DNA of 64,000 bases, taken from Macrostomum hystrix (lineage: Eukaryota > Animalia > Platyhelminthes). The position numbers and the translations under genes were made by a program. The stretch lies in NCBI GenBank assembly GCA_950097015.1, contig CATNEN010000010.1, positions 2,790,001 through 2,854,000 of the forward strand, in the 5' to 3' direction. This document shows positions 6,197-62,568 of the stretch, in pieces (positions within the stretch are counted from its first letter, which is position 1; every line of letters begins with the position of its first letter). The notes below the pieces were generated by a model that made no database searches, had not been told where the DNA came from, and saw only the letters and a list, made by a program, of their open reading frames with translations.

Positions 6197-7800
6197 TTAA
6201 TGCGCATTCTAGGGTTAGAAAGTCCGAGGCTGCATTTGATGGTCACGAGGCGAGCGAAGCGAGCCGAGGACCATTCAGTGTGGCCGAGGACTTTTTACCA
6301 TAGAATGCGCATTAAACTACATACCGTGATCTTATATGAAATCTGAATTGCTTATTTTCCTCTTGAGCCCCGCCGAATGCGGTGCAGCCATCGGGAGTGT
6401 CGGGGCAAAGCCCCCACATGGAACCATAGACGAATTCGCGAAACGCCAAAAACAAGAACAGCAGATGACCGAAAGTTCACGCTATTGAAGGAATAAAAGT
6501 AGATTGTCACTCCCATGTGATGGTTACACAGTTCTCCTCTCCGTTCGCCACAATCTTCATCTTCTTCGCAGGACGATGGTCTTCAGTTGCAAATAAGGCA
6601 GTAATGCCCCCTGTGGCAGTAGCAGCAGATGGGGCCGTAGCATGGGTTGGTAGATTGGTCAGTGTGGTAGTGGTACCCCCTGAATGGCCTGTGTGCAACG
6701 CGTCTGAGATGCGCAGATGGTCAGTACTGTCAAGGAAATGTATATCGCTCTATATCACTGCTTGAATGGCCCGTGACCCTAGCAATGTCAGCCCGTTCGA
6801 AACCAGCCTTTCGTAATTCAGTTGCGCAGGTCTTCCTTAATGATTGATTCGTAAAACGCATGCCATTGCCATTGCCAGTACTAGTTAGCTCCTTAACAAT
6901 GTTGTCAAGAGTGTGGCGGCCAAGAGGTACGTTCTGATACCATTTTCCGGCAGCAATGCTTGTCTCCTTGAGATAGTAGCTCAGGAACAAGCTGCTAACA
7001 TGGCAGTTCTCGGGGCGCTTCTCATTGTACTTCATGTAAATACAAACAAGACAGCGCTCGTGTCCAGGTGTATGGAACGCACGCATTTCACGAGGAGGAG
7101 TAGGTTTGGCCTTCAAGCCACGATTGTTGGTTTTATTAGCTCTCTGCTTTGTGAAGAGTAAATGTGAGAGATACAATTCAGACTACTGACAACAGTAGAA
7201 AAGCAAAGACTTGGCTGCAAAACTCTCACATAACACTAAAAAGTATCGCCATAAAAATGGCAAGCTTAAAAGAGACTTCTGTGCACACTAAGAGTGGTGG
7301 GAGAGGACGGCGTGTGGCTATGGCTGACTGACGAAGGCAAACAAGCCAGAAACCGGTCTCGGTCTGCCAGCGCGAGGTTCGTTCCCCACTTGCAGAAGCC
7401 GTTTCAGCCCTAATAATAACAGGCCCAATCGAATCTGTTGGTTCTGATACCCCAGTTGTTGTTCTATTAGCTGGTTCGAACAACTCATCTAACCAGTCCA
7501 ACGCTCCAGGTTGACCCAACGGATCCATGTCACTGACGGATTACTGACACTGGATGAAAAACTATTTCAAAAAGCTTTGTTTCACGAGGCCAGTGTGGTA
7601 GTCGTACCATGCACGAGGCGCAAGTCTATACATAAAAGGTATATCATAAAAGGTGTTTAAAGTGTTTTAATAGGTTAAATAACGTATTACCCTCTAATTT
7701 TGTGTTCTATGGTAGAAAGTCCTCGGACGCTATTCTCGGACGTGACTCGAGGCGAAGCCTCGGCCTGATAAACGCATCCTCGGACTTTCGTGTTATTCCT
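6197..7800 (-). mobile_element. Decayed Crypton-type (DUF3504-like tyrosine recombinase) DNA transposon
   Basis: ORF 6730-7176 has RCLVCIY...KWYQNVPLGRHTL...TNQSLRKTCAT...IARVTGH...IERY, the YR catalytic core as in CryptonA/ZMYM/KCTD1 domains. Upstream LADRDRFLAC...SPTTLSVHRSL and a frameshifted C-terminal tail are present. Related imperfect hairpins lie at both ends. Confidence 0.8.
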
Positions 7801-9524
7801 ATAATTCCTGTTATTTTTGTTGCATTTAAATACGTTTATTAGTTCTGTTTAGTCTATGGTTCAGACTGCTTTCATTTCGGGACCATCAAATGATTTGATG
7901 GTCCTGGAGTTATAGCACTTTCAACCATGGACTAGGCGTTCCTGGCAAAGAATGAGCCCAATAACTGTCAATAAAATAAGCAGTCGGATTTCATATATTA
8001 CGAGCTAGATCCAGAAGTTTATATTCTTTCATATACACTAAATTAAATTTATTCTTAAAATTTCTTTTTGTACTTTTACTAGAGTTTTTACTAAAGTACA
8101 CCTTCTCTATGGCCAAACTTGTACTCGAGCACTTGTACTGTATGTTTTCTCTTTACTAATTATGTAGAAATTTAGACAAGCCATTCATAAAAATCTCCCA
8201 AATGTTTTCAAGCTGTACTTTATGGCTAAGATCCTTCTTAATCTCGCAGCAAATGCATGTAGAAAATTAAATTATGGATATTAGGAGTCAAAGGCTTTCC
8301 TCTGCATGCTTCCAATCATGTTTAAACAGGAAATTAACAGCGAAGTTCCCAATTAGGAATTAAATTAAAACAAAAAGCAAACACGCGCTGAATAGGATTT
8401 TATGCATTTTTAGCTGTCAATTTCCATTCAGACAATGCGGGGTCAAAAGGTGAGGAAAGAGTCTGCAGCATCGCATTGTTTAATCAGCGAATAAAAAGCT
8501 TAGATTGCATCGAACAATTTTACAATATCATGTTTTCTCCGAGAAGCCTTTCAAACCCAATTAGGAGCAACTGCCGCGTGACTGGAAGCAGAGAGCTGCG
8601 TGGGGACGGAGCCACAATGCGACACGCTAGAGTGACAGGCCCAGAGAGCGGCAGATCAATACACTCGATTGCCAAACAGCTCGCACTGACTTACTATTTT
8701 GCGCTATACCAATATTTCCACCTGAAATGCTGTGAAATCCCTACTAAATTCGGGTCAGGAACTGGCGACCTCCGCAGCTAGAGAAATCCCAAAAAATGAT
8801 TTCAATAATAGATCCTCAAGCTGGACTATGCAGATCCGCGAGGCGTGTCTGATCCCAAAGATCCCCCGCTGGCGGTGCCACAATATTCCCAAAATAGATC
8901 CCACAGCGGCAGGTGCAGCTGAAAATTGCGCAGGTCCTGGCAGACTCCCCATCTTCTGTCCAGTGCAGTCAGTTCGTGTTCCACCCAGTCCCAGCTTTGA
9001 CACAATGGCGGAGTCAATAACGGAGCCGCAAACGGCGGACATGACAATTTCGATTTCCCAGGCCTCCATATATTTTGTCATCCAAGACTTTTTCATCAGC
9101 CCCAGCGCCTTCTTGTCCCTCCCCTCTGGCGTGACTGTTGGCCTTGTTTTTTGCAGTCTGCGGAGGCCCGCGCGGGGGTGGCTGCGGGGTCGAGAAAGCA
9201 GACGCTGCATAGCCCGGGAAGACGAGAAGACAAGAAGAAGCAAGACGCAATGGCTTGTATTGTTGCACCTGTCATCATCAAGCAAAGTGGAAGGCGGAGA
9301 GACAAGGCAGCGAGTGAGGGAATGGGAGGCCGGTCTGATGTAGCATCGGAAATAACATGTGGGAACAGAATCCCAAGAACACGACTTTCACTGCAGACCC
9401 ATTATTTGTCTCGAGTGCTTCGATTTGTATGCAGCGAGGCAGTAAATGCAGAGGCCGAAATCATTTTGACTTCCGTGCGACCGTCTGAATTGGGTCTGTG
9501 CAGAGCAGGACTGCTGACATGCCA

Positions 9525-10144
9525 GTCTGAGCTGTGACTCCATGAGATGTGAGCAGTCTGAGCTGTGACTCCATGAGATGTGAGCAGTCTGAGCTGTGAC
9601 TCCATGAGATGTGAGCAGTCTGAGCAGTGACTCCATGAGATGTGAGCAGTCTGAGCTGTGACTCCATGAGATGTGAGCAGTCTGAGCTGTGACTCCATGA
9701 GATGTGAGCAGTCTGAGCTGTGACTCCATGAGATGTGAGCAGTCTGAGCAGTGACTCCATGAGATGTGAGCAGTCTGAGCAGTGACTCCATGATGAGATG
9801 TGAGCAGTCTGAGCTGTGACTCCATGATGAGATGTGAGCAGTCTGAGCAGTGACTCCATGAGATGTGAGCAGTCTGAGCTGTGACTCCAATGAGATGTGA
9901 GCAGTCTGAGCTGTGACTCCATGAGATGTGAGCAGTCTGAGCTGTGACTCCATGATGAGATGCGAGCAGTCTGAGCTGTGTTTCCATGAGATGTGAGCAG
10001 TCTGTGCTGTGACTCCATGAGATGTGAGCAGTCTGAGCTGTGACTCCATGAGATGTGAGCAGTCTGTGCTGTGACTCCATGAGATGTGAGCAGTCTGAGC
10101 TGTGACTCCATGATGAGATGTGAGCAGTCTGAGCTGTGACTCCA
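9525..10144. repeat. 31-bp minisatellite, left arm (about 20 copies)
   Basis: Unit GAGCAGTCTGAGCTGTGACTCCATGAGATGT; translation repeats every 31 aa. Confidence 0.95.
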
Positions 10145-10519
10145 TAATCTCACATCCTTGAATTCCTGCCTGTCTAATCAGCCAGTCAGCCAGTTTTTCT
10201 TTGCCTATTTGAATTCGTGCCTGCGAATCGCATTGAAAATAAACAAAAGCTGTAGGAGTGGCTTCATTGGGTCCCCTGCATTCCTGGAAAGACCACAATG
10301 TCCACTTAGCAGCCGCTGTCCATCGGTTTGGCACACCAAAGTTGTTTATTTCCCGGTGACGGATCCGACCACATGACTGTCACCGGCGTCATAAGCAGCT
10401 GCAGGTGAAGAGACTGCTGCCACAGCAACTGCAGGGGACTCAGCTTGCAACTCTCTGCTGTTGCATCCGCGTCTTCAGATTGACTGCAGTCAGCAGTCGA
10501 AGGCTAATTGGGTAAAGGC

Positions 10520-11283
10520 CGGATTTTGAGTGGTAGAGGAGCGGATTCTCAGTGGTAGAGGAGCGGATTCTCTGTAGTAGAGGAGCGGATGCTCGGTGGT
10601 AGAGGAGCGGATTCTCAGTGGTATAGAAGCGGATTCTCAGTGGTTGAGGAGCGGATTCTCAGTGGTAGAGGAGCGGATTCTCAGTGGTATAGAAGCGGAT
10701 TCTCAGTGGTTGAGGAGCGGATTCTCAGTGGTAGAGGAGCGGATTCTCAGTGGTAGAGGAGCGGATTCTCAGTGGTAGAGGAGCGGATTCTCAGTGGTAG
10801 AGGAGCGGATTCTCAGTGGTTGAGGAGCGGATTCTCAGTGGTAGAGGAGCGGATTCTCAGTGGTAGAGGAGCGGATTCTCTGTAGTAGAGGAGCGGATGC
10901 TCTGTGGTATAGAAGCGGATTCTCAGTGGTAGAGGAGCGGATGCTCTGTGGTATAGAAGCGGATTCTCAGTGGTAGAGGAGCGGATTCTCTGTAGTAGAG
11001 GAGCGGATTCTCAGTGGTTGAGGAGCGGATTCTCAGTGGTAGAGGAGCGGATGCTCTGTGGTATAGAAGCGGATTCTCAGTGGTAGAGGAGCGGATTCTC
11101 AGTGGTAGAGGAGCGGATGCTCTGTGGTATAGAAGCGGATTCTCAGTGGTTGAGGAGCGGATTCTCAGTGGTAGAGGAGCGGATTCTCAGTGGTATAGAA
11201 GCGGATTCTCAGTGGTAGAGGAGCGGATGCTCTGTGGTATAGAAGCGGATTCTCAGTGGTAGAGGAGCGGATTTTCAGTTGTC
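10520..11283. repeat. 22-bp minisatellite, left arm
   Basis: Unit GAGGAGCGGATTCTCAGTGGTA with variants. Confidence 0.95.
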
Positions 11284-12204
11284 GAGGGCGGATTCTGAGA
11301 TCTCAATCTCAGATGAGAATGTTAAGCAGCGATTATCATATTTGATACGTAAGTAAGTCGAGCGTAAGTCGTGATTTTTTCAGTTTACTTGGCAGCAAAG
11401 AAGTGGGACAGTTAAATATTTATTGCCCAATGGTTGCTATATATCTTATAGCACATTTATAAAGCTTCAGTCAAATATTAGTTTATAAAGCATTTAGTTA
11501 GGGAGCAGTTTCAGTGAATGGGGGCTGATTCTGAATTGTAGGGGCCGATTCTGAATGCAGTACAGACCTTATACTTCCCATGAAATCGCAGCTTCTACTA
11601 AGCCTTGGGGTTCGGAAACTTTGATAGAGTGAGTTAAGATAAGTTATGCTGGTCTTTGTACAGAATGCATCGATGGCATCTCGCTGCACCTGTCACTATC
11701 TAGCAATGTGACAAAGTGGAGGATTTGGTTTTTCAAAGGCGCATAGGGATTGATTTAATTCGATTTACTTCTTTGTGTAAGAAAGAAGCACTTTACACAG
11801 CTTTTCAAGTGCCTTGAAGTGGATCCGGACAGCAAAGCAGTTTTGTGCGGATTGAAAGTGCGAACTCTTGCTGTTTCTATTTTTAGATTTGTCAAAGTAC
11901 GAGTATTTTGTGCATTTCATCTGACAGTCGGTGACACATTTTTATGGTAAGATGCTGCATGATGATCTGTCCGCACAGGTGTTAGCGGGAAAAATCTAAT
12001 TTTTTGCGACTTTTCAAATAGTTTTTTAGATTAAAAATCGAAGTAATAGAAAATGATTAAAGCTACTCAATTAAATCGGCTAAATATAACTTGCAGAAAT
12101 TGTCTATTTACTACTTACGATTTCCATGTCAGTAGTATCGACTCCAATTTTTAAGGACTGATTCATTGATCTGAAAATATTCGTTTGAAGGTAAGAATGA
12201 GACA

Positions 12205-13650
12205 AGGGGAGAATGGGAGAATTGGAGAATGGGAGAATCGGAGAATGGGAGAATTGGAGAATTGGAGAATGGGACAATGGAAGAATGGGAGAATCGGAGA
12301 ATGGGAGAATTGGAGAATTGGAGAATTGGAGAATGGGACAATGGAAGAATGGGAGAATCGGAGAATGGGAGAATTGGAGAATGGGAGAATTGGAGAATGG
12401 GAGAATGGGAGAATAGGAGAATCGGAGAATTGGAGAAACGGAGAATTGGAGAATGGGAGAATCGGAGAATAGGAGAATTGGAGAATTGGAGAATGGGACA
12501 ATGGAAGAATGGGAGAATCGGAGAATGGGAGAATTGGAGAATGGGAGAATGGGAGAATAGGAGAATGGGAGAATAGGAGAATCGGAGAATTGGAGAAACG
12601 GAGAATTGGAGAATGGGAGAATTGGAGAATTGGAGAATGGGACAATGGAAGAATGGGAGAATCGGAGAATGGGAGAATTGGAGAATGGGAGAATTGGAGA
12701 ATGGGAGAATCGGAGAATGGGAGAATCGAAGAATTGGAGAATCGGAGAATTGGAGAAACGGAGAATTGGAGAATTGGAGAATCGGAGAATGGGAGAATTG
12801 GAGAATGGGAGAATTGGAGAATGGGAGAATGGGAGAAAGGGAGAAAGGGAGAATGGGAGAATCGGAGAATGGGAGAATTGGAGAATGGGAGAATGGGAGA
12901 AAGGGAGAATGGGAGAATGGGAGAATGGGAGAAAGGGAGAATTTTAGAATGGGAGAATCGGAGAATGGGAGAATTGGAGAATGGGAGAATGGGAGAATGG
13001 GAGAATGGGAGAAAGGGAGAATTTTAGAATGGGAGAATCGGAGAATGGGAGAATCGGAGAATGGGAGAATCGGAGAATGGGAGAATTGGAGAATGGGAGA
13101 ATGGGAGAAAGGGAGAATTTTAGAATGGGAGAATTGGAGAATGGGAGAATTGGAGAATTGGAGAATTGGAGAATGGGAGAATCGGAGAATGGGAGAATCG
13201 GAGAATTGTAGAAACGGAGAATTGGAGAATGGGAGAATCGGAGAATGGGAGAATTGGAGAATTGGAGAATTGGAGAATGGGAGAATTGGAGAATGGGAGA
13301 ATTGGAGAATGGGAGAATTGGAGAATGGGAGAATTTTAGAATGGGAGAATTGGAGAATGGGAGAATTGGAGAATTGGAGAATTGGAGAATGGGAGAATTG
13401 GAGAATGGGAGAATTGGAGAATGGGAGAATTTTAGAATGGGAGAATTGGAGAATGGGAGAATTGGAGAATTGGAGAATTGGAGAATGGGAGAGTCGGAGA
13501 ATGGGAGAATTGGAGAATGGGAGAATCGGAGAATGGGAGAATTGGAGAATGGGAGAATTGGAGAATCTGTGAATGGGCGAAGGGGAGAATTGGAGAATGG
13601 GAGAATTGGAGAATCTGTGAATGGGCGAAGGGGAGAATGGGAGAATTGAC
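12205..13650. repeat. Purine-rich satellite built from 8-9-bp GGAGAAT(T/G/C) units
   Basis: Read directly; it produces the spurious 540-aa SPIL-repeat ORF on the minus strand. Confidence 0.95.
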
Positions 13651-14892
13651 GAGGAGGAGAAGGGAAGAATTGAATAAAAAAATTCGAACGGAAGAAACCC
13701 AGGGGGGTAAAAGGTCATCAGGGGAGTTTGAAGATTTGGGACGTGAGGCAAGCGAAGGGAGGAATGGACAAAGGAGTGTTAGAGCAGGGGGAATCAACCC
13801 TATAGATTCCCATCAATGCTAGATGCTGGGTGGTAGAATGGATGCTTTTATTTAGAAGCGAAAGTACGAATAAGTTTCGAAGAGAGCTACTTCCATTTCC
13901 TAAAAAATGCCGAACACCAATAAAATGAGGCAATTGAGCACGAATCGCGAAGTCCGCATAGCAGACTGCCAGTGCCGTAGTTGCTATGCAATTATGCACA
14001 GTAGACAGCCAGCTTATAGGATGTGGCACAGGCTGCAGCTTGGCATTTGGGAAGTGTATAGCAGTTCGCTAATAGCGCAGCTGCCATTTCCTATCGTCTT
14101 ATCCCGGCAGTTTCTAAGCAATTCAGCAGCGCTGAGATTTCCCGTTTCACATTCCTCGGCAGTCTAGCAGCTTTGGGAGGCTGGGCAAAAAATGTCTTTT
14201 CAAAGCAAGAAGGAACGAAAAACAATTCCGCAGCTGCAGTTTGCTCAACAGCTGTCGCCAAGCCTCAGCCAGGTAGAGTGGATCGCATTCTTACGGGGAT
14301 TTTATCCTGTGTGAGGGGAACAGGCGCTGGGACGACACGAACAACGGGAAAGCAAAGACGGCTTTTCTGTGATTCCCGCTGAAGCCGGGCAGACCCTCAG
14401 CAACTGCGGGGAGGCTGAGGGCCGATGATGGCCGCATGCGCACAAGAGCCTCCCCCGCTGCCTTAATGACCCGCTCGGCAACCACCCCCTCCGCACCGCT
14501 GCATTCCGCTGCACAGGCGACTTCGGCGCAGCCTGAAGGACAAGCGTCAGCTGACGGGCCCGCAACCGCCTGGCAGCAGCCGAAACTTTTAGAACAGTTT
14601 TTTTAGAACAGGATCAGGGCTCTTCAGCCGAGGGGCTGGGAGGCGAAAAGCAATGTCCAGGCAGATACTAGCGGCTGCCTTTCTCAGCATTTCGAGTCCA
14701 GAAAGACTTCAATGTCAAAAGGAAATCGCTGCAGGAATTAAATGCCTTATAAACTAAACTATGAGTGAAGCTTTATGACTTTGCTATATTGAGCCAGCAA
14801 CCATTGTGCAATCAGTATTAAATTTTAAGTTTTAATCATGCAATGTGAATTGTTTGAATTTGACACATCACCGAATATGATCAAGGCCGCTT

Positions 14893-15730
14893 GACAACTC
14901 CGAAATCGCTCCTCTACAACAGATAATCCGCTCCTCTACCACTGAGAATCCGCTTCTCTACCACACAGAATCCGCTTCTCTACCACACAGAATCCACCCT
15001 GAGCATCCGCTCCTCTACCAGTGAGCACCCGCTCCTCTACCACCGAGCATCCGCTCCTCTACCACTCAGAATCCGCTCCTCTATCACTGAGAATCCGCTC
15101 CTCTACCACACAGAATCCGCTTCTCTACCACACAGAATCCACCCTGAGCATCCGCTCCTCTACCAGTGAGCACCCGCTCCTCTACCACCGAGCATCCGCT
15201 CCTCTACCACTCAGAATCCGCTCCTCTATCACTGAGAATCCGCTCCTCTACCACTGAGAATCCGCTCCTCTACCACTGAGAATCCGCTTCTCTACCCCCG
15301 AGCATCCGCGCTCCTCTACCACTGAGCATCCGCTCCTCTACCACTGAGCATCCGCTCCTCTACCACTGAGCATCCGCTCCTCTACCACTGAGCATCCGCT
15401 CCTCTACCACTGAGAATCCGCTCCTCTACCACTGAGAATCCGCTCCTCTACCACCGAGCATCCGCTCCTCTACCACTGAGAATCCGCTCCTCTACCACTG
15501 AGAATCCGCTCCTCTACCGCTGAGAATCCGCTCCTCTACTACTGAGAATCCGCTCCTCTACCACTGAGAATCCGCTCCTCTACCACTGAGAATCCGCTCC
15601 TCTACCGCTGAGAATCCGCTCCTCTACCACTGAGAATCCGCTCCTCTACCACTGAGAATCCGCTCCTCTACCACCGAGCATCCGCTCCTCTACCACTGAG
15701 AATCCGCTCCTCTACCACTCAAAATCCGCC
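14893..15730. repeat. 22-bp minisatellite, right arm (reverse complement of the left array)
   Basis: Unit TACCACTGAGAATCCGCTCCTC. Confidence 0.95.
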
Positions 15731-16099
15731 CTTTACCCAATTAGCCTTCGACTGCTGACTGCAGTCAATCTGAAGACGCGGATGCAACAGCAGAGTTGCA
15801 AGCTGAGTCCCCTGCAGTTGCTGTGGCAACAGTCTCTTCACCTGCAGCTGCTTATGACGCCGGTGACAGTCATGTGGTCGGATCCGTCACCGGGAAATAA
15901 ACAACTTTGGTGTGCCAAACCGATGGACAGCGGCTGCTAAGTGGACATTGTGGTCTTTCCAGGAATGCAGGGGACCCAATGAAGCCACTCCTACAGCTTT
16001 TGTTTATTTTCAATGCGATTTGCAGGCACGAATTCAAATAGGCAAAGAATAACTGGCTGACTGGCTGATTAGACAGGCAGGAATTCAAGGATGTGAGAT

Positions 16100-17008
16100 T
16101 ATGGAGTCACAGCTCTGACTGCTCACATCTCATCATGGAGTCACAGCTCAGACTGCTCACATCTCATCATGGAGTCACAGCTCAGACTGCTCACATCTCA
16201 TGGAGTCACAGCTTAGACTGCTCACATCTCATTGGAGTCACAGCTCAGACTGCTCACATCTCATGGAGTCACAGCTCAGAATGCTCACATCTCATGGAGT
16301 CACAGCTCAGACTGCTCACATCTCATGGAGTCACAGCTCAGACTGCTCACATCTCATGGAGTCACAGCTCAGACTGCTCACATCTCATGGAGTCACAGCT
16401 CAGAATGCTCACATCTCATGGAGTCACAGCTCAGACTGCTCACATCTCATGGAGTCACAGCTCAGACTGCTCACATCTCATAGAGTCACAGCTCAGACTG
16501 CTCACATCTCATGGAGTCACAGCTCAGACTGCTCACATCTCATGGAGTCACAGCTCAGACTGCTCACATCTCATGGAGTCACAGCTCAGAATGCTCACAT
16601 CTCATGGAGTCACTGCTCAGACTGCTCACATCTCATGGAGTCACTGCTCAGACTGCTCACATCTCATCATGGAGTCACAGCTCAGACTGCTCACATCTCA
16701 TCATGTAGTCACAGCTCAGACTGCTCACATCTCATGGAGTCACTGCTCAGACTGCTCACATCTCATCATGGAGTCACTGCTCAGACTGCTCACATCTCAT
16801 GGAGTCACTGCTCAGACTGCTCACATCTCATGGAGTCACAGCTCAGACTGCTCACATCTCATGGAGTCACAGCTCAGACTGCTCACATCTCATGGAGTCA
16901 CTGCTCAGACTGCTCACATCTCATGGAGTCACAGCTCAGACTGCTCACATCTCATCATGTAGTCACAGCTCAGACTGCTCACATCTCATCATGGAGTCAC
17001 AGCTCAGA
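16100..17008. repeat. 31-bp minisatellite, right arm (about 29 copies)
   Basis: Unit ATGGAGTCACAGCTCAGACTGCTCACATCTC. Confidence 0.95.
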
Positions 17009-18279
17009 CTGGCATGTCAGCAGTCCTGCACTGCATAGACCCAATTCAGACGGTCGCACGGAAGTCAAAATGATTTCGGCCTCTGCATTTACTGCCTCGC
17101 TGCATACAAATCGAAGCACTCGAGACAAATAATGGGTCTGCAGTGAAAGTCGTGTTCTTGGGATTCTGTTCCCACATGTTATTTCCGATGCTACATCAGA
17201 CCGGCCTCCCATTCCCTCACTCGCTGCCTTGTCTCTCCGCCTTCCACTTTGCTTGATGATGACAGGTGCAACAATACAAGCCATTGCGTCTTGCTTCTTC
17301 TTGTCTTCTCGTCTTCCCGGGCAATGCAGCGTCTGCTTTCTCGACCCCGCAGCCACCCCCGCGCGGGCCTCCGCAGACTGCAAAAAACAAGGCCAACAGT
17401 CACGCCAGAGGGGAGGGACAAGAAGGCGCTGGGGCTGATGAAAAAGTCTTGGATAACAAAATATATGGAGGCCTGGGAAATCGAAATTGTCATGTCCGCC
17501 GTTTGCGGCTCCGTTATTGACTCCGCCATTGTGTCAAAGCTGGGACTGGGTGGAACACGAACTGACTGCACTGGACAGAAGATGGGGAGTCTGCCAGGAC
17601 CTGCGCAATTTTCAGCTGCACCTGCCGCTGTGGGATCTATTTTGGGAATATTGTGGGACCGCCAGCGGGGGATCTTTGGGATCAGACACGCCTCGCGGAT
17701 CTGCACAGTCCAGCTTGAGGATCTATTAGTGAATGATTGAGGAAGCATGAAATCCCCTGCCATTTTCGTCTGTCACACAGTTTCCCCAAACTTAATTCCA
17801 GAGCTGCTGGGTTTGCTAGCCGCTGGATTGCAAGTTGATCGAGGCGGGCAGTCTGGGAGAGATGCCGCTAGCAGGTGCAGCGATGGCGCGTGTATTCTGT
17901 GACTGCGGACTGCATGAAAAATCACGGATTGCACACGACAGACATTGTGAAAACACTTGATGCAGCAATCTAGAAATACTTTGTAGTCTTAAATGGTTTC
18001 TAATTTTATGATGTACTGAGTTAAGTTTAGATTCAAATAGCTCTGCATAGGCATTGCTCTAATAATGGGACCCTTTGTTACATGACTTTTTTATGCTGTC
18101 TTACAGCAATCGGCGGGTTTTTGAGACCGCTGCATGGGCGGGCCTAGATTCTGAAATTTCCAGCAATTAATTTTATTGGATCCCAGTGAAGCGAAAGTTG
18201 CAATTACTCTATGATTGACCTCTGATTCTGAATTTTTTTTGGTAGATTTTAAATCACAGTCTCTTTTCACCTTCCCCTA

Positions 18280-33065: not shown

Positions 33066-33397
33066 CTAGAATTTTTGAAGTTCTTAAGGTCGATTAATCA
33101 CTCCGATTCGGCGATGAAAGATAAAATAATAAAAGCTGAAGTGATTGCTGCCACAGACAGGCAATTTCATTATAACTAATGACAAGAAAATTTCCTGGAA
33201 AGGGCCAACAAGCACCTTATTGGTTCCTAAAAATAGACATCGTAGCTGCACTGAAGTGTGGCAAGCAACGGCTGGAGTTTAAACAGAGCTCTTTTCACAG
33301 AGTAAAGGTACAAACAGGATTTCCAAGAAATTCTGAGCGTAACAGCCAATCCTAAGCGGTCAAGGACTCAAAAATTTCGGCTTAGTTTAGGTCGTAC

Positions 33398-33618
33398 TGT
33401 GGCGGCCAGGTCTGCACGCGGCGCGACTCTGGGTGCATATGCACTCAAACCCCGGGCCGCCTGGCTGGTTTGAGTTAGTCTCGCTAAGCCGGGGGGTTAC
33501 GGACTCTCGCCACCTCACGCGCACCTCCCCACGCTCTGAAGCGCTATTTAAGATCTGTTTGACTAATAAATAAATTTACGCTTTCTCGCGCACTGCATTT
33601 CATTTGCGAGACACTAAA
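33398..33618 (+). repeat. 5' LTR (221 bp)
   Basis: TGTGGCGG...GACACTAAA, followed by the PBS. Confidence 0.95.
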
Positions 33619-36600
33619 TTGGTGAGCCCGACTACCCCAGCCGTGCTGAGGAATGACTGAGTCAGCCGTTGCACTCAAACTGCCCACGTTTTGGGCCTCG
33701 CAGCCCCGGGCCTGGTTTATTCAGGCCGAAGCCCAGTTCAATCTGCGGCGAATCACTGAGGACAACACTAAGTACACGCACGTAGTCGCTGCTCTCGACC
33801 AGATCACAGCCGAGCGACTACTCGATGTGCTGGAGCGTCCGCCGGAAGAGGACAAGTACCAGAGCCTGAACGTTTGGCCTCACTCGACAGCTGCGGGCCA
33901 GCCGCCTCCTCGGAATGTCCGGCCTCGGCGACAAGCGTCCTCTGTAGAGAAATGCTCGCTCTGCTAGGTGACCATCCCCCCGTGCCTCCTGTTCGAGGAA
34001 ATTTTCCGCCAGCAGCTGCCCGCCGACGTCAGGATGATGTGGACTTCAGCGACCCGCGGGCCGCAGCGCAAGAGGCCGATAAGCTGTGGGCGAGCCGGTC
34101 GCAGCCGTTCACAGCCTCCGTGCAGCATCCCGCTGCAGAGCAGCCGCCGCATCCGCCTGCTCAGCCGTCCTTGCAGCTAGCCTCCGCCCGACCAGGCAGA
34201 GTCGCAAACGCTCGGATGACGGCCTGTGCCGTTTTCACCGCCGATTTGGTGCGGCGGCCCGCCAGTGTCAGGCGCCCTGCAGCTTCCAGGGAAACGGACA
34301 GGCCGGCCGTCAGTGATCAGCTCGGCGGCCGGTAACAGCAGCCTGCTGCTCATCCCCGATGTCCAGACGGGCCGGCGCGTCCTGGTCGACACGGGCGCCG
34401 AGGTCAGCATTTTTCCCGTCGCCGGCACTGATGCTCGCCTGCGGACGCCTGGCCAGCCGCTCTTCGCAGCCAACGGCAGCCCCATCCGCACCTTCGGTAC
34501 CCGCCAGATCACGCTCGACCTCGGAATCCGGCGCTGCTCCTGGCCGTTCATCCTGGCCGAAGTCTCCCGCCCGCTGATCGGCGCCGACTTCCTGCGGCAC
34601 CATGGCCTGCTGGTGGACCTGCCGCACCGACGCCTGCTGGACGGCCAATCGTTCGCCAGCGTGCACCTGCTGGACAGCGTGGGACCCGGCCTGCAGCTCG
34701 CCGCGGACCCGTACAGCCAGCTGCTGGCGGAGTTCCCCGGCCTCACCGAGCCCAGTTTCCAACGAGCCCTGCTGCGCCACAGGGTCGAGCACCATATCCC
34801 GACCAGCGGCCCGCCTGTCCACGCTCGCCCACGCCGCCTGCCGCCAGACAAGCTGGCGGTGGCCAGGGAGGAGTTCCGACTCCTGGAGCGGCTCGGCATC
34901 GCTCTCACAGCCCGTGGTCGTCGCCGCTGCACATGGTGCCCAAGGTGTCCGGCGGCTGGCGGCCCTGCGGCGACTTCAGGCGGCTGAACGACGTCACGGT
35001 GCCAGACCGCTACCCGGTGCCGCACATCCAGGACTTCTCGGCCCGCCTGGCCGGCTGCTCGGTCTTCTCCAAGATCGACCTGGTGCGCGGCTACCACCAG
35101 GTGCCCGTGACCGCGGCCGACGTGCCCAAGACCGCCGTCATCACCCCGTTCGGCCTCTTCGAGTTCCTGCTTCGAGTTCCTGAACGAGGCCCTGTTCGGA
35201 CTCAAGAACGCCGCCCAGGCCTTTCAGCGGTTGGTCGACTCCGTGTGCCAGGACCTGGATTTCGTCTTCGCATACATTGAAGATTTCCTGGTGGCCAGCC
35301 GCAGCCAGCAGCAACACCTGGAGCACCTGCGGATGCTTTTCCAGCGCCTCGCCGACAACGGCCTCATCATCAACCCGGCCAAGTGCGAGTTCGGCCGCAG
35401 CGAGATCGACTTCCTCGGCCACCGCATCAGCTCCGAGGGCGCCGTGCCACTGCCAGACAAGGTCGACGCCATCGCGGGTTCGCGACGCCAGCCACCGTCA
35501 AGGGCCTGCAGGAGTTCGCCGGGATGTTGAATTTCTACCACCGCTTCGTGCCACGGGCCGCCCAGCTGCTGCGCCCAATCCATGCGGCCACGGCCGGTAA
35601 GGAGAAGTTTGTCCGCTGGACGCCCGAGCTGACCGACGCTTTCGACGGAGCTAAGCGGGCGCTGGCGGCCGCCACCATGCTGGCGCACCCGCGGCCGGAC
35701 GCGCCCATCGCCCTCACCGTCGACGCCTCGGACACCGCGGTCGGCGCGGCGCTCGAGCAGCGGGTCGGAGGCGCCTGGCAGCCGCTCGCTTTCTTCAGCC
35801 GGCAGCTCCGCCCACCCGAGCAGAAGTACAGCGCCTTCGACCGCGAGCTGCTCGCGCTGTACCTGGCGGTCCGGCATTTCCGCTACTTCCTGGAGGGCTG
35901 CGTGTTCACCGCCTTCACGGACCACCAGACGCTGGTCGCCGCCATGTCCAGGATGTCCGACCCGTGGTCCGCCCGGCAGCAGCGGCACCTGGCCTACGTG
36001 TCCGAGTTCACAACGGATATCCGGCACGTGGCGGGCAAGGACAACCCGGTGGCGGATGCGCTGTCCCGCTGCACTGTCTCCTCGGTGCGGCCCCGGCTGC
36101 TCCCCGGCGATGGCGCAAGCGCAGGCAGCCGACCCGGCCGTCCTGGCCCTGCAGCTCAGCCCCGGTGACGCCCTGCTCTGCGACATCTCGACCGGCCGGC
36201 CGCGGCCGCTGGTGCCGCCAGACTTCCGCCGCGCCGTTTTCGACGCCATCCACGGCCTCGCGCACCCGTCGGTTCGCAAGACGCAGCGCCTCGTGGCCGC
36301 CAAGTTCGTGTGGGTCGGCATGAACCGGGACGTCAGCAGGTGGGCCCGCGCCTGCGTCGCCTGCCAGACGGCCAAGGTGCACCGCCACGTCGCCGCCCCG
36401 GTGGACAACATTCGCGTGCCGGACCAGCGCTTCGCCCACGTGCACGTCGACCTAGTGGGGCCGCTAGCGCCGTCGCAGGGTTTCACGCACCTGCTGACCA
36501 TCGTGGACCGCTTCACCCGCAGGCCGGAGGCGATCCCGATGACCGATACGTCCGCCGCCGCCTGCGCCGCCGCCTTCAGCGCTCATTGGATTGCCCGGTT

Positions 36601-37419
36601 TGGCGTGCCGAGCGACATCACCTCGGACCGCGGTCCCCAGTTCACCTCGCAGCTGTTGTCCAACGTCTCCCAGCTCCTCGGCATGCAGCTGCACCGGACC
36701 ACGGCTTTCCATCCGCAGGCGAACGGGCTGGTCGAGCGGTTCCACCGGCAGCTGAAGGCCGCCCTCATGGCGAGGCTGGCAGGGCCGGCCTGGGTCAGCG
36801 AGCTACCCTGGGTGTTGCTCGGCATCCGGACGGCCCCCAAGGAGGACCTGCCAGCATCGTCGGCGGAGCTGGTCTACGGCGCGCCCCTCTGCGTACCCGG
36901 CGAGTGCCTGCAGCCCAGCCAGCCCGCCGGCGACGGCGACCAATTCCTAGGACAGCTCCGCAGCGCCGTGCAAGCCTTCCGGCCGACGCCGACAGCGCAT
37001 CACGGCAGTCACCGCACCGCTTGGCCGGCGGCCCTCGACGCCTGCACCTACGTTTTCGTGCGGCGGGATGGTCACCGAGCTCCGCTGCAGAAGCCCTACG
37101 ACGGCCCGTTCAAGGTCATCGAGCGAGGCGCCAAGGCCTTCCTGCTAGACCTGGGAACCCGCAGCGACCACGTGACCGTCGACAGGCTCAAGCCGGCCGT
37201 CCTCGACTTTCGAGAGCCAGTACCGACGCCGGCTGTGCGCCCGAGAGGACGCCCACCCCAGCAGCCTGCAGCGCCACCGCTGCCTGCCGGGGCGACCGAC
37301 GAGGCCGACCGACCGCCGCCAAGCGCCCAACGCGCCGCCGCCCTCCCCAGCCGTCGGCAACCGCCTCGCCAGTGCCGCCCGACGACTTTCGGAGCCTAGC
37401 TCGGTGCTGGGGGGAGCCC

Positions 37420-37654
37420 TGTGGCGGCCAGGTCTGCACGCGGCGCGACTCTGGGTGCATATGCACTCAAACCCCGGGCCGCCTGGCTGGGGGGGTGGGT
37501 GCACCCGACCCACCGGCTCGCTAAGCCGGGGGTTACGGACTCTCGCCACCTCACGCGCACCTCCCCACGCTCTGAAATGCTATTTAAGATCCGTTTGACT
37601 AATAAATAAATTTACGCTTTCTCGCGCACTGCATTTCATTTGCGAGACACTAAA
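37420..37654 (+). repeat. 3' LTR (235 bp)
   Basis: Matches the 5' LTR except for a block substitution and a few SNPs. Confidence 0.95.
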
Positions 37655-43230: not shown

Positions 43231-45178
43231 GAATTTTCGTCAACTTTTTTTCGTTAACTTGGTTGATGAATGTTCCAACCATCATTTCTGCAGTTGACGA
43301 ATATTCCAAATCTTCCAAATGTGTGCTGCCTGTTGACAAAAGTTCCACAGCCAGATTGAAGGCATTGGAGAACTGCCTTTGTGCACAATTTATTGCGTAT
43401 GCTGTATTGCGTATTCAACATGTGTTGATTGCCATTGTGCAGAAAAGCCTCCATATTTTCTCAGATGAATGTCACAAGACATTAATGATTTAGCAACGAA
43501 ACTATTCATCTTGTCAATTCATTCACTCTGATTTCCAAGATTGCAATGAATAACAAAGTTTTTTAGAAAATGTGCACTATATGTGAAGCACTTGATACTG
43601 TTATCACAATAATAAAATTGTACTGTAAATGCAAATCAATGTGCACTGTAGATGGCTTGGAAAACTAGAGTGCGAGAAAAAAAGAACTAAAGTGCACAGC
43701 GAAAGTCTCATAAAAAGTGACAACCTTACAATCTGAGCATGAACTAGCTAGCAGATATACATGACTTGCAATTTGGCACATGATCAGTGTGCACTGTGCA
43801 GTGTCCAACACAGTTTAGAGAAAATGTGCCAGGCGCCACTGATTTGTGGAGTATATATATATACTTGTACACACTCTTTTGTTTTGCTGTCACTTGCATG
43901 GAATAAACAACAATATCGAAAAACTTCAACAAAGCAAAGCACAAATGGCACCTCAGGTGCCAAATGTGAGCACATTAGTGCACATTGCGAACAAGATATG
44001 CGAAGCTGATAGACCAGTGCCACTTGCAGATCTGACATTCAAAAATTCTAAAAGTCATGTACTCGATGACTTTTCTCTGTTTGAGCTGCGCGTTGATTGT
44101 ACGGGAAAGTGCCATCTGCTGTTTTTGACAAATGTACAGTGGACTACACTCTCATTAAGTCGGGTCTGGTTTATGGACAATACTTTTGAAGTTGTGAGGG
44201 AGCCTTTAGACAGCTTTACATGTTCTACTGCTACATCTGCCAAGGAGAAGCAGCAAAGCAGGTGGTCTTGGCATTTGCTTCAATGTCTGGGAAGGCTCTA
44301 CATGACTACCTGGCAGTCTTCCAGCACCTTAGAAGCCTACTACTGAATGGCAGTCTTCCGCAGGCATTTGTTCTGGACTTCAAATGTGCCGCATGGCAGG
44401 CCCTATGTGTCCTCTTTCCTGAAGCAACACTGAAGGGCTGCCTGTTCCATTACGCACAGGCTGTGTTCTGTCACATTCAACAGGCTGGCCTCCAGTAGGC
44501 ATATATAGCAGATCCTGGTACAAAAACTTTCTGCTGGATGCTCATGGCTCTGCCATATCTCCCGGCTGAGCACATGGAAGAGGGCTTAGCATAGATTGTC
44601 ACGGGAATCGTCAACCCATGCCTTCTTAAAGTCACAGTTTACGTCGATGCTACCTGTTTGAACAGCCCAATGTTATTACAGACTTATTGGTTATTGGCCC
44701 AATAGCCCAACCCTCACTGGTTCCAAAACATCAAGCCAAGCTATATTGTACAATATTTATACTATAACTGCATGTTTGTACTGCAACTTGTATCTTAATG
44801 TTTTAACATTTTTACCATTGAAAATTTGTTCAATCAACTATTCGCAATTTTACCATTCTCGCATTTTTACTGTCCTAAAAGTAAAACAATAGACAATAAA
44901 GACATGTTCATTGAATTGTTACTGTTGAAGTTGGACATGAAAAATGAGAAAGTAAAATATGGTATGACTGGCAAGTTGAATTCTTGCCAAGTAATAAAAT
45001 ATGTATCACATAAGTTCAAGTTAAAGTGCATACAATCGCAACTAGTTGACAAAAATAACATTTCTCATTGGTAGTTCATGAAGATTCCATTGTTCCTATT
45101 GGCAGTTGACAAACATTCCAACTACCAATGAATTTTTGTCAACTCTCAGTTGACATAAAAAAAGTTGATAAAAATTCT
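43231..45178 (+). mobile_element. Decayed MULE (Mutator) DNA transposon
   Basis: Frameshifted transposase WFMDNTFEVV...FVLDF...AAWQAL...FPEATLKGCLFHYAQAV...LMALPYLP (about 43900-44690). Diverged TIR-like ends: GAATTTTCGTCAACTTTTTTT at 43231 versus its approximate reverse complement ending at about 45178. Confidence 0.8.
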
Positions 45179-46210
45179 AGGATCTGGTAATAGTTATGAT
45201 TGTATTGATAGCAGTGTTTCAATAATTTATCTTAGTAGGCAGGTCAGAGGGCATTGTGAAAATGACCATCTTTGGTGCATTCAACATGAGGCTCATACAT
45301 GCGCAACCTCCCAAACCTTAGCTGGCCATGCAACTTAGTTTTTGCTCTCATTTGCGACTTAGTTTGTTTCATTGCTCTATTTACAACTTAGTTTGCTCTC
45401 ATTTGCTCTCTTTTTCTCTCCCCCTTTTCCTTTTCTTCACACCTTCCTTTTTTGTCCCTTGGTCCCCCCTTTGATTTTTTTGCGCTTGGTTGATTGCTTT
45501 TTGCAACTTACCTTGCTTGGCCCTTGTTTCACCCGGCCGGTACGGCCGGGTCGGCCGGGTGTTGCGCATGTATGATGAGGCTAATCCACAATGCTGCAAA
45601 AATCAGGCCAAGATATCAAGATTAGCTATCAAGTTGCCAGTACTTTCAGTTCTATAGCTAGCTAGTCTTATAATGAATTCCAAATTTTATAACAAACTGC
45701 TACCAGAATGCTACCAAAATGTTAAGACTAAAAAACAAGAAAACTAGACTATTTGACAATATATTAGTCCAAACAATAAATCACTACCCATGTAGCTTTT
45801 ATCAGGCAGAATACTTATATTTAGTATTGATAGTATTTTCATAGTATTTTCATAAATAAATTGACAGTATTTTCATAAATTAAATTTTCATAAATAAATT
45901 GATCGAATTTTCATAAATTAAGTTCTTTTTATAGCTAGCTATAGTAGTTTAGCTAGTTAAACTATGTTATTCATTTAATATTTTAGCTAAAATCTAAAAA
46001 GTAAAGTAAAAAAACAAAAAACTAAATAGGCCTAATCATTACCATTACCAAACGTGGTAACATTCAGTCTGATATTTCATGCTACTATTATATAATAATA
46101 ATTATTGTTATGCAATTTTGCAAGGAAAAATAAATAATTTGGCCAAAGCACAAGTAACTATTTACAAATCTTGATAGAGGCTCAGCATTCAGATATTACT
46201 AGCACACTAA
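44647..46210. repeat. Inverted repeat 2, left arm (1564 bp)
   Basis: Reverse complement of 48565-50128; one mismatch seen by eye. Confidence 0.97.
45294..45574. mobile_element. 281-bp MITE with 14-bp TIR and 8-bp TSD
   Basis: TIR CATACATGCGCAAC...GTTGCGCATGTATG; perfect TSD ATGAGGCT (45286-45293 and 45575-45582). Confidence 0.92.
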
Positions 46211-48564: not shown

Positions 48565-50128
48565 TTAGTGTGCTAGTAATATCTGAATGCTGAGCCTCTA
48601 TCAAGATTTGTAAATAGTTACTTGTGCTTTGGCCAAATTATTTATTTTTCCTTGCAAAATTGCATAACAATAATTATTATTATATAATAGTAGCATGAAA
48701 TATCAGACTGAATGTTACCACGTTTGGTAATGGTAATGATTAGGCCTATTTAGTTTTTTGTTTTTTTACTTTACTTTTTAGATTTTAGCTAAAATATTAA
48801 ATGAATAACATAGTTTAACTAGCTAAACTACTATAGCTAGCTATAAAAAGAACTTAATTTATGAAAATTCGATCAATTTATTTATGAAAATTTAATTTAT
48901 GAAAATACTGTCAATTTATTTATGAAAATACTATGAAAATACTATCAATACTAAATATAAGTATTCTGCCTGATAAAAGCTACATGGGTAGTGATTTATT
49001 GTTTGGACTAATATATTGTCAAATAGTCTAGTTTTCTTGTTTTTTAGTCTTAACATTTTGGTAGCATTCTGGTAGCAGTTTGTTATAAAATTTGGAATTC
49101 ATTATAAGACTAGCTAGCTATAGAACTGAAAGTACTGGCAACTTGATAGCTAATCTTGATATCTTGGCCTGATTTTTGCAGCATTGTGGATTAGCCTCAT
49201 CATACATGCGCAACACCCGGCCGACCCGGCCGTACCGGCCGGGTGAAACAAGGGCCAAGCAAGGTAAGTTGCAAAAAGCAATCAACCAAGCGCAAAAAAA
49301 TCAAAGGGGGGACCAAGGGACAAAAAAGGAAGGTGTGAAGAAAAGGAAAAGGGGGAGAGAAAAAGAGAGCAAATGAGAGCAAACTAAGTTGTAAATAGAG
49401 CAATGAAACAAACTAAGTCGCAAATGAGAGCAAAAACTAAGTTGCATGGCCAGCTAAGGTTTGGGAGGTTGCGCATGTATGAGCCTCATGTTGAATGCAC
49501 CAAAGATGGTCATTTTCACAATGCCCTCTGACCTGCCTACTAAGATAAATTATTGAAACACTGCTATCAATACAATCATAACTATTACCAGATCCTAGAA
49601 TTTTTATCAACTATTTTTATGTCAACTGAGAGTTGACAAAAATTCATTGGTAGTTGGAATGTTTGTCAACTGCCAATAGGAACAATGGAATCTTCATGAA
49701 CTACCAATGAGAAATGTTATTTTTGTCAACTAGTTGCGATTGTATGCACTTTAACTTGAACTTATGTGATACATATTTTATTACTTGGCAAGAATTCAAC
49801 TTGCCAGTCATACCATATTTTACTTTCTCATTTTTCATGTCCAACTTCAACAGTAACAATTCAATGAACATGTCTTTATTGTCTATTGTTTTACTTTTAG
49901 GACAGTAAAAATGCGAGAATGGTAAAATTGCGAATAGTTGATTGAACAAATTTTCAATGGTAAAAATGTTAAAACATTAAGATACAAGTTGCAGTACAAA
50001 CATGCAGTTATAGTATAAATATTGTACAATATAGCTTGGCTTGATGTTTTGGAACCAGTGAGGGTTGGGCTATTGGGCCAATAACCAATAAGTCTGTAAT
50101 AACATTGGGCTGTTCAAACAGGTAGCAT
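48565..50128. repeat. Inverted repeat 2, right arm (1564 bp)
   Basis: Positions map as x to 94775-x; ORF twins 44826..45074+ vs 49701..49949- confirm. Confidence 0.97.
49201..49481. mobile_element. Mirror copy of the 281-bp MITE in the right arm
   Basis: Same TIR and TSD, duplicated with the arm. Confidence 0.92.
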
Positions 50129-51539: not shown

Positions 51540-52790
51540 TATCATCCACTAGGGCTTCCACTGCACAATCGTCGTCAAATGCGCGCACAGCGTACTGTAC
51601 ACTGTTATGAATATGGTGAAGGCTACAGCCCCAACGTCAATAAGATGGTGCATGTCAGCATCGTCACGCAGCTTCGTCACCAGGCCACCACGGGATCCTG
51701 AAGTGAAAAGACACAAGAGTTGATGAGTTAGACTTAAATAAGAACACTGGGGCATAATGGTAATTGCTGTTACTTACCTCGCATAGCATTGAAATTGTCT
51801 GTCATAATGGACATGACGTTCTCGGTCGGCAAATGGTTGTCCTTGAGCATTTTCAGGACCAATCCTTTCATGCCATCGGCAGTTGAGTCAACCAGCTCCT
51901 CTGTGCCAATGTGCATCAGTAGTACCTTCTGGTGCTCAACTGAGAATACTCGACCTAGTACAACCAGCCAGGAGCGATCTCTTCGCATGCCTTCGTCAAG
52001 TAAGATTGAGAACGGCGCAGTTCTCAACTCCTCGGGCATCAATTTTTTCGCATAAAGTCCTAATGCCTCGCATATGATGTACGCTGTTTTTGTTCTGCAG
52101 CAGGAGTAATCCTCAGCAATTTTGCTGTCTGAAAACGCAACAGGAAGTACCTTGGCCAGCTCATCCATGAAGCGAAAGGAAACATCCTTCTTGACGATTG
52201 TAGTGCACAACCGAAGGCATGCCTCCATCTGCTGATCAGAAGCTTTGTCGCGTCTTGACTCGCCAGCATAAGCAAAAAAAGATGTGATTGACTGTTGCTG
52301 GTTGCTCTTGCCCATTGGGTTTTGCAGATGACCGGCGGCAGCCTTGTGCTTCGCCCCATCAGCATGCTGGCGCAATGCACTTATTCCGTGCAACAAAACT
52401 ACCACGGTCTTCTGACAAACGTTGCAGTAACCTTCGTCCAGCTTTTTCCCTTGGGCGTCACAGTTTTGTCGGCACCATTGGCCAATTGGGGAACAAACCT
52501 CGCGCTGGCAGACCAGTTTCTGGCTTGTTTGCCTTTGTCAGTCAGCCATAGCCACACGCAGTCCTCTGCCACCACTCTTAGTGTGCACAGAAGTCTGTTT
52601 TAACCTTGCCATTTTACGGCAATACTTTTTTAGTGTTATGTGAGAGTTTTGCAGCCAAGTCTTTGCTTTTCTACTGTTGTCAGTAGTCTGAATTGTACCT
52701 CTCACATATACACCCTTCTTCAAATGTTGGCACTCTTGCCAACAAATTTTTCTGCTGGCTCTCTTACCCTCCTTTTTGGGGTGGCCAGGT
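51540..52790 (-). mobile_element. hAT transposase pseudogene, N-terminal to middle fragment
   Basis: BED-like YCNVC...LRQHADGAKH, LLDEG, MTDN, an 80-nt intron (51777-51698), then MRGSRGGLVTKL and a frameshifted CSLH motif. Confidence 0.75.
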
Positions 52791-52952
52791 ACGCCCACTG
52801 CAAGGAACCAATTGTAACACACTAAAAGTGGGGAACAAACCTCGCGCTGGCAGATCAAGACCGGTTTCTGGCTTGTTTGCCTTCGTCAGTCAGCCATAGC
52901 CACACGCAGTCCTCTGCCACCACTCTTAGTGTGCACAGAAGTCTGTTTTAAC
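52489..52952 (+). mobile_element. Two fragments (52489-52710 and 52826-52952) homologous to the Crypton at 7160-7392
   Basis: Near-identical sequence, e.g. GGGGAACAAACCTCGCGCTGGCAGA...GTGCACAGAAGTC...CAGTAGTCTGAATTGTA. Confidence 0.85.
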
Positions 52953-55682: not shown

Positions 55683-56996
55683 AGCGGGTTAATAAGACAG
55701 TAATGGTCATTACTGTCTAATAACTGACGAGCAGAGATAAAATAATTCGCTCCTGACATTTGTCGGAGCCAGCCGAACCTGCGCTCGATGCTGTCCGATT
55801 GCAGGGAGCCAAGAAGCACATATGAGAAACCCTCGTGACTTAGCAGGTGTCTAGCACAGGCTGCGATTGACAAGCAGGTTAGCCGGCAGGAAAGAAAAGT
55901 CTCCTTGGACAATCCTGGTTCTCGCGTTGTCTCCCAGTCCTGCGAATATTTTTATGGACGAGGAGTTCCTTTACTTTAGCATTTTTTCATTACTGATCGC
56001 AATTCTAGAAAATTTCATCCCTTATATTTTTTGTTACTCGTATTTATAGGCAGAATTAAAGCAATTGAGTATTTTCATGCAATAAAATATTATGTACGAA
56101 GTATTTCATACCTGCAGAAATCCGGCGAACTCTTCCAGAAAATTCAGCTTCCAGTCAACGGATGAGCGAACAGGATCCTTCGTGTAATCCCGCTTGTAAA
56201 GGCCCTTCGACGCTGACTTGACATTCAGAACATTCCAGAGCTTCATGATCATAGAGATAAAGGTGGCAGTGTCACCCCAGTCCTTGCCTTCGTACTTCGT
56301 GTAGTATGCTAGAGCATCCCGCGTTGACTCACAAAAAACAGCGGTGGCCAGCTTTACAGATGATTTTTCTATACTCTTTGGATTGAGCACAGAAGGATTG
56401 AGCTTATGAGCTAGTCTCACGGGTTTGCTGATTTCGGTATTATAGAGCTGCACTATATGGTCAAAATGAGCACTGCAGGCCTGCGATAGTACAGGTGGAA
56501 ATTCGGGGCAACGAAATACCTTCCGAGCTTGAAAATTGTTGTACACATTTTTCAAGTCATGAACTGGATCGAAGATAAGGAAGATGGGCTGCCCAGTAAC
56601 TTCGTCTATGATAGAAAAATTGTGCTCCTTGTTGCACAGCAAATCGATTATGAACTTTCTATTCACAGGTGCGTTATCCACGGATATTGCGATGACAGAG
56701 AAATGCAGACTTCTAAGAGTATCCATAACTTCTTTAAACCAGTTATTCAGCTTGTAGGCGGTCAGCGTAGATACTGGCTTCATTGTAACCATATCCTTGT
56801 AGTTACCAGCAATGGATTTAATCATGAAGCAACAGAATGTTGATGCGACTGCTCCACTAATCGTCCACGCCGCTAACCTTGCCACTGCTGTATTCAATCC
56901 GGTTGGCAACGTAGATCTCGTCAATGAAGAGAATGACCACCTTCTCCATTTGGGAAAGTTCAGTCCAGATGCTTCTATTCAGGGGTCCTTGACCTA
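55683..56996 (-). mobile_element. P-element-superfamily (THAP9-like) transposase fragment with one intron
   Basis: ISVDNAPVN, FDPVHDLKNVYNN, RLAHKL, VKLATAVF; intron 56111-55940; then LQSDSIERRFGWLRQMSG. Truncated at both ends. Confidence 0.88.
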
Positions 56997-62196: not shown

Positions 62197-62568
62197 GAAT
62201 AAACAGCTGAAAATCAATAAGTAAGGATTAGAGCAAAGAGGCTAGCTAAGGAAAATGCTGTATACTTCATAAATATATAAATATTTGTAGAAATTGATTT
62301 ATTAGGCCTAGTCTAAGTGCTAATTAGACAATAAAAACAATTGAAGTATGCAGCTAAGTATTTTGAAAAGCCTACTCCTAACATTTACCAAACTAGTGTT
62401 TAGCATTAAGAAAGTATATTTGCCTGTTTAAATTGCACTTTTTGTTGTTGTGATTTGGAATCACATTAACAACAATTATAACACAGCTGTTTTTAATAAC
62501 AAAATGAATAATAAATAATACACAAATGAAGAAAAAAATTAAAAAAATCCATTTTAGATTTAAGACTA

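Follow-up and report, generated by a model that had tools for sequence, protein, structure and literature searches.

A young core and an old inner island within one inverted repeat of the flatworm Macrostomum hystrix

Are the nearly identical arms of an inverted repeat the product of a recent duplication, or of an old one kept alike by gene conversion between the arms? The question is raised by a locus in Macrostomum hystrix, an inbred, selfing flatworm kept in the laboratory. The locus lies in a stretch of 64,000 nucleotides, hereafter the window (contig CATNEN010000010.1, here C10, positions 2790001-2854000 of the forward strand, assembly GCA_950097015.1), in which two inverted arms at 8801-11499 (~2.7 kb) and 14736-17733 (~3.0 kb) are separated by a 3.2-kb spacer, ~9 kb in all. 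An earlier note on the window, made from its letters alone, had claimed an ancient inverted duplication homogenised by a recent conversion tract, on the argument that old, diverged homology flanks a near-identical core on both sides. We find that the structure is genuine and carries two ages, a young core and an old inner island. The argument from both flanks fails on the outer side, where the match is at chance level, and the conversion interpretation is plausible rather than established. All genome searches described below were made in the M. hystrix assembly of 220,453,370 bases in 42 contigs.

Each arm consists, from its outer to its inner end, of a unique module (U1), a minisatellite with a 31-bp unit, a second unique module (U2), a minisatellite with a 22-bp unit, and a short diverged stretch which we call the island (Table 1). 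A repeat search of the window returned the inverted pairs 8801-9545 / 16989-17733 and 10079-10454 / 15792-16167, both at 99% identity, and a blastn self-match aligned 9503-11499 to 16748-14736. The two copies of U1 were aligned without gaps and are identical at 715 of 722 positions, with mismatches at left-arm positions 8805, 8828, 8877, 9079, 9211, 9498 and 9504. The two copies of U2 (10146-10510 and 15738-16100) are identical at 360 of 363 positions and differ in addition by one 2-bp indel. The near-identical inverted copies that had been reported for the unique modules were thereby borne out. With respect to the spacer, no inverted homology was found between its two halves (z=0.1), and it holds a 1.45-kb array of (AGAATGGG)n type (12194-13646, Tandem Repeats Finder, TRF). 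A G-quadruplex barrier in this central array was considered and dropped, the canonical motif covering just 121 of 1453 nt.

Inward of the 22-bp arrays the arms remain recognizable as copies of each other. Positions 11412-11499 and 14736-14822 are identical at 68 of 88 sites, giving a local alignment score of 46, where dinucleotide shuffles score 11.8±1.4 (z=24), which upholds the claim of diverged inverted homology on this side (given there as 11412-11498 against 14737-14822). An additional collinear patch of 23 bp nearer the array (11320-11342 against 14896-14874) is identical at 18 of 23 sites (z ~3.5). The innermost ~200 bp of the arms are thus ~77% identical and the outer arm mostly ~99%. 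When mismatches were counted, the island differed at 21.8% of sites (19/87) and U1 and U2 together at 0.92% (10/1085; Fisher P=5e-16), corresponding to Jukes-Cantor distances of 0.26 and 0.009, respectively. Exact two-block patterns taken from the island matched at the two arms only, genome-wide. The excess over shuffles and the confinement of these motifs to both arms indicate that the island is genuine arm homology of far greater apparent age than the core. A dispersed-repeat origin of the island was also considered and rejected; a 17-mer searched with 2 mismatches gave 172 hits against 53 for a control, and the best of these could not be extended (score at most 20, against 46 for the arms).

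The presence of two ages within one pair of arms (0.9% and ~22% mismatch) means that neither a single recent duplication nor an assembly artefact is sufficient to explain the locus. The artefact has something to recommend it. The assembly (Wiberg et al. 2023) was built from PacBio reads of the inbred line SR1 with canu, polished with Arrow and Pilon, and purged of separate haplotypes (PMC10468722), and a divergence of ~1% combined with minisatellites of unequal length resembles a pair of alleles, so that one arm might be a mis-joined haplotype or the product of a chimeric read. However, the 3.2-kb spacer and the two flanks that anchor the arms are all unique, the arms are of unequal length, and the collinear 77% homology that runs into the island is something a mis-join would not create. 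Fold-back read artefacts yield identical arms without a spacer, and the line that was sequenced had been strongly inbred (F ~0.998). We regard an artefact as highly improbable.

The minisatellites within the arms locate the transition between the two ages. In the 22-bp array the majority unit is identical in both arms (16/35 units on the left, 12/34 on the right), the minor variants are nearly all private to one arm, and each array has internal duplications of its own, among them a block of the right array (IJKL) which is present twice as a higher-order duplication. At the outer end of the array, the units of the two arms are near-identical and follow the same order. The innermost, degenerate pair of units is ~82% identical, yet a derived GTTGT variant is common to both. 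This old-type innermost pair with its common derived variant, together with the likeness of the outer units, suggests that the 22-bp array dates back to the old repeat and has since been homogenised over most of its length. The young-to-old transition falls within the array and not neatly at its inner end; the sharply bounded core of the earlier description is sharp at its outer edge and not inward. In the 31-bp arrays, four unit variants (A-D) are common to both arms and occur in partly collinear order. Units of both minisatellites were found genome-wide in the two arms only.

Table 1. Features of the inverted repeat, in window coordinates
Feature	Position	Strand	Remark
8-bp direct repeat GAAATCCC	8783-8790, partner 17749-17756	+	just beyond both arm ends
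Left U1, outermost unique module	8801-9522	+	partner 17012-17733
Left 31-bp minisatellite	9523-10145	+	19.7 copies, TRF
Left U2, unique module (~365 bp)	10146-10519	+	partner 15738-16100
Left 22-bp minisatellite	10520-11296	+	~35 copies, TRF
Left inner island, old diverged arm continuation	11297-11499	+	partner 14736-14893
Spacer, unique, asymmetric	11500-14735		no inverted homology between halves
Right inner island	14736-14893	-	partner 11297-11499
Right 22-bp minisatellite	14894-15737	-	~38 copies, TRF
Right U2	15738-16100	-	partner of left U2
Right 31-bp minisatellite	16101-17011	-	28.7 copies, TRF
Right U1, outermost	17012-17733	-	partner of left U1

On the outer side of the arms a different picture was obtained. 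Arm identity ceases within ~10 bp of positions 8801 and 17733. Old homology had been claimed to continue outward, between 8501-8529 and the reverse complement of 17941-17972; the letters are present, but the pair scores 11.0, exactly what the best alignments of shuffled flanks average (11.0±1.7, z=0.0). Wider outer flanks were also similar at chance level only (z of -0.3 and -0.4; three flank sizes tried). Similarity no better than shuffles, which the earlier note had named as the result that would overturn its reading, was therefore seen for the outer flank and not for the inner one (z=24). At the arm edge itself, U1 has 3 of its 7 mismatches within 77 bp of its outer end (P=0.03).

The reading that we favour, at about even confidence, is that of an old palindrome in which the long outer arm was homogenised by arm-to-arm conversion and the inner island was isolated behind the 22-bp array. 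An old, locus-specific inverted duplication would have come first, its age being read from the innermost 200 bp, where the divergence after correction amounts to ~26%. The outer arm, comprising U1, the 31-bp array, U2 and most of the 22-bp array, would later have been homogenised by intrachromosomal gene conversion, most recently not long ago to judge from the ~0.9% divergence that remains. The island may have escaped because it is short and is cut off from the core by ~0.8 kb of 22-bp minisatellite. Rapid turnover within that array would scramble the register of its units, so that heteroduplex could not run through it, and on the outer side conversion tracts would stop where homology stops. 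In the sex-chromosome palindromes of primates and mouse, it is established that close inverted arms with more than 99% identity undergo conversion (PMC8327919, PMC8981503, bioRxiv 10.1101/800185).

As the source of the young zone, conversion is in our judgement slightly favoured over a second duplication, at much the same even level of confidence, because a single rearrangement then suffices, the fast-evolving 22-bp array offers a natural barrier, and mismatches crowd at the outer edge of the arm. This crowding in U1 weakly suggests an edge effect, such as recurrent conversion should produce if its tracts seldom extend to the limit of homology. The base composition is weakly suggestive as well. 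The guanine plus cytosine (GC) content is 50-53% in the unique modules of the core, 32.5% in the left island, 32.3% in the right island and 39-43% in the flanks, and a GC-rich core is what GC-biased conversion would tend to produce.

Several observations weigh against this reading. Old homology is absent beyond the outer edge (z ~0), so nothing shows that U1, the 31-bp array and U2 belonged to the old repeat, and a conversion tract would have to extend almost to the original boundary, ending within ~10 bp of it. Nor is the GC contrast specific, since the unduplicated part of the spacer at 13647-14735 also has a GC content of 52%. The clustering at the edge rests on 3 mismatches and could also be yielded by error-prone synthesis during a template switch. 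Finally, the differences between the arms are read from one assembly and are unpolarised.

With the outer match at chance, the earlier exclusion of simpler histories fails, and a history in which an old seed was later extended explains the locus equally well in outline. According to this alternative, a short inverted repeat, made up of the ~200-bp island and some 22-bp units on each side, seeded a later outward inverted duplication. A stalled fork or broken end would have folded back or switched template within the short repeat, copied the adjacent 2-2.5 kb in inverted orientation (the 22-bp array, U2, the 31-bp array and then U1), and joined up again with the flank. On this view the young zone would be ~1% old in divergence and conversion would not be needed. 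The old homology lies on the spacer side only, which is where a seed must sit; the short inverted repeat that seeding requires at this inner junction is provided by the diverged island pair, directly at the spacer border. The clean outer break with chance-level similarity beyond it agrees with such a history, as do the mismatches clustered at the outer junction, which could reflect error-prone synthesis close to a template switch. A seeding role of short inverted repeats in inverted duplications is established, in models of origin-dependent inverted-repeat amplification (ODIRA) and of fold-back (PMC4689423, PMC10766183, PMC10766186). A fresh inverted duplication in the same window (44647-46210 / 48565-50128) further indicates that new inverted duplications with kilobase spacers arise in this genome.

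The same history has costs. Two independent rearrangements are required at one locus, and the nearby fresh palindrome arose without a detectable seeding repeat, so that a seed is not required here. The typical ODIRA product is an inverted triplication and not a simple two-arm structure. Moreover, close inverted arms of more than 2 kb would be expected to convert in any case, so that conversion is not long avoided. Taken together, we consider seeded extension a serious possibility, though probably not what happened.

The fresh palindrome was itself characterized. Its arms, of 1564 bp, differ by a single mismatch (45162/49613) and enclose a spacer of 2354 bp. It is sharply delimited at both edges, beyond which no diverged extension is seen. 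Neither arm occurs at other loci, apart from the copy that each carries of a dispersed repeat of ~282 bp, located at 45293-45574 (arm positions 647-928) and in the mirror copy. A first look at this repeat gave 924 candidates, of which 40 were scored, on many contigs and with identities of 93-96%; a family of short interspersed nuclear elements or of miniature inverted-repeat transposable elements is probable.

Genome-wide searches for the components of the older palindrome bear on whether it might be a mobile element. U1 and U2 each have two copies in the genome, both at this locus, and the unique parts of the spacer and both outer flanks are single-copy. A dispersed transposon family or other shared repeat was ruled out on this basis, all components being confined to the locus in 220 Mb; the DNA search is blind below ~80% identity and overlooked the island's own 77% partner, so that it is close copies alone which are excluded. 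In 20 open reading frames (ORFs) from the arms, spacer and adjacent flanks no Pfam domain was detected; the best match, to Peptidase_C48 (E=0.06), fell under the cut-off. A word search found no protein relatives of the 203-aa ORF in U1, and neither Rfam families nor tRNAs were found within the window. Judged from its sequence, the locus looks non-coding.

One mobile element would nevertheless resemble the locus, namely a solitary, non-autonomous foldback-type transposon inserted as a unit, its arms either inherited alike or homogenised within the element. Long inverted arms of tandem repeats with different unit lengths, unequal arms and a non-repeated loop are all features of the present structure, and the 200-kb sample of contig C1 that we examined holds another inverted pair of satellite arrays. 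The arms are also bracketed by the 8-bp direct repeat GAAATCCC, the longest word common to both 30-bp flanks, which lies just outside them. Among 20000 shuffles, 99 gave a shared word of at least 8 nt, as did 15 of 1484 equally spaced pairs from the window (p ~0.005-0.01), and the pair may represent either a target-site duplication or a chance match. Its copies are offset from the repeat ends by 3 nt on the left and 8 nt on the right, however, and neither the bases between them and the arm ends nor the arm tips match each other. U1, U2, both minisatellite units, the island and the spacer are confined to this locus, no transposase or other Pfam domain was found in the ORFs of arms or spacer, and insertion alone leaves the two ages unexplained. 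A foldback-type transposon is, on balance, unlikely. A more particular form of the idea appears decidedly unlikely, in which a single-copy foldback-type mobile or hairpin-forming element entered as a unit, GAAATCCC marks its insertion and the arms generate private minisatellites in place. If true, the locus would be a snapshot of foldback arms giving birth to new locus-specific satellite DNA.

The C1 sample (C1:5000001-5200000) contained four local inverted pairs of at least 300 bp, two of which belong to one satellite-array pair. At sample positions 183744-185089 and 187744-189988 satellite arrays with a 124-bp period are inverted relative to each other at 98-99% identity across a ~2.7-kb spacer, in a foldback-like arrangement.

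The DNA of the window is rich in minisatellites and transposons. Between 3995 and 41292 there are about twenty different minisatellite arrays, with units of 15-41 bp and individual lengths of 0.3-1.6 kb. Many have one strand strongly enriched in G or in C, and which strand this is changes along the region. A long terminal repeat (LTR) retrotransposon occupies 33397-37654 in a block of 68-71% GC, with direct repeats (33397-33618 / 37419-37654) that are 90% identical and an internal ORF at 36056-37399 (+) containing Integrase_H2C2 and rve domains. The ORF at 56106-56924 (-) has a TNP-like GTP-binding insertion domain and an RNase H N-terminal domain and is probably a transposase remnant. A further ORF, at 61570-62217 (-), matched the OST-HTH/LOTUS domain slightly under the Pfam cut-off (23.7 vs 23.8 bits) and may form one exon of a gene for a germline RNA-binding protein. 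Inverted copies of a ~230-bp repeat, at 7158-7392 and, 45 kb away, at 52483-52711 and 52826-52951, are 92-95% identical and probably represent another dispersed element.

The locus offers a small, clean inverted repeat, apparently non-coding, with two clearly different ages. If it is indeed non-coding, selection on genes cannot be invoked for the identity of its arms. In M. hystrix it could be used to measure conversion between arms, the limits of conversion tracts and the effect of a minisatellite as a barrier. It is an unexceptional member of a familiar class and leaves the knowledge of palindromes unchanged.

Three known systems can be set beside it. Foldback transposons (Drosophila FB/NOF; Rehavkus-type) have in common with the locus inverted arms of tandem sub-repeats, a repeat number that differs between arms and a central loop. 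Here, in contrast, the structure is single-copy and lacks a transposase, its tips are unmatched, and an offset 8-bp direct repeat stands in place of a target-site duplication. In duplications attributed to ODIRA or fold-back (PMC4689423, PMC10766183, PMC10766186), as here, a short imperfect inverted repeat lies at the inner junction of a far younger duplication and the outer junction is sharp. Those events produce an inverted triplication or a terminal palindrome, whereas the present locus shows a plain two-arm duplication around a spacer of 3.2 kb.

The sex-chromosome palindromes of primates and mouse (PMC8327919, PMC8981503, PMC8600007, bioRxiv 10.1101/800185) differ in scale, with arms of 8 kb to 1.45 Mb against 2.7-3 kb here. 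They differ also in setting, the present arms being half minisatellite, with no gene detected in them, and lying on a chromosome of a hermaphrodite flatworm. The age is taken here from an internal diverged island and there from orthologous palindromes in other species. As in those palindromes, inverted arms of ~99% identity surround a unique spacer, the duplication may be older than the identity of its arms suggests, and instability and divergence are concentrated beside the centre of symmetry.

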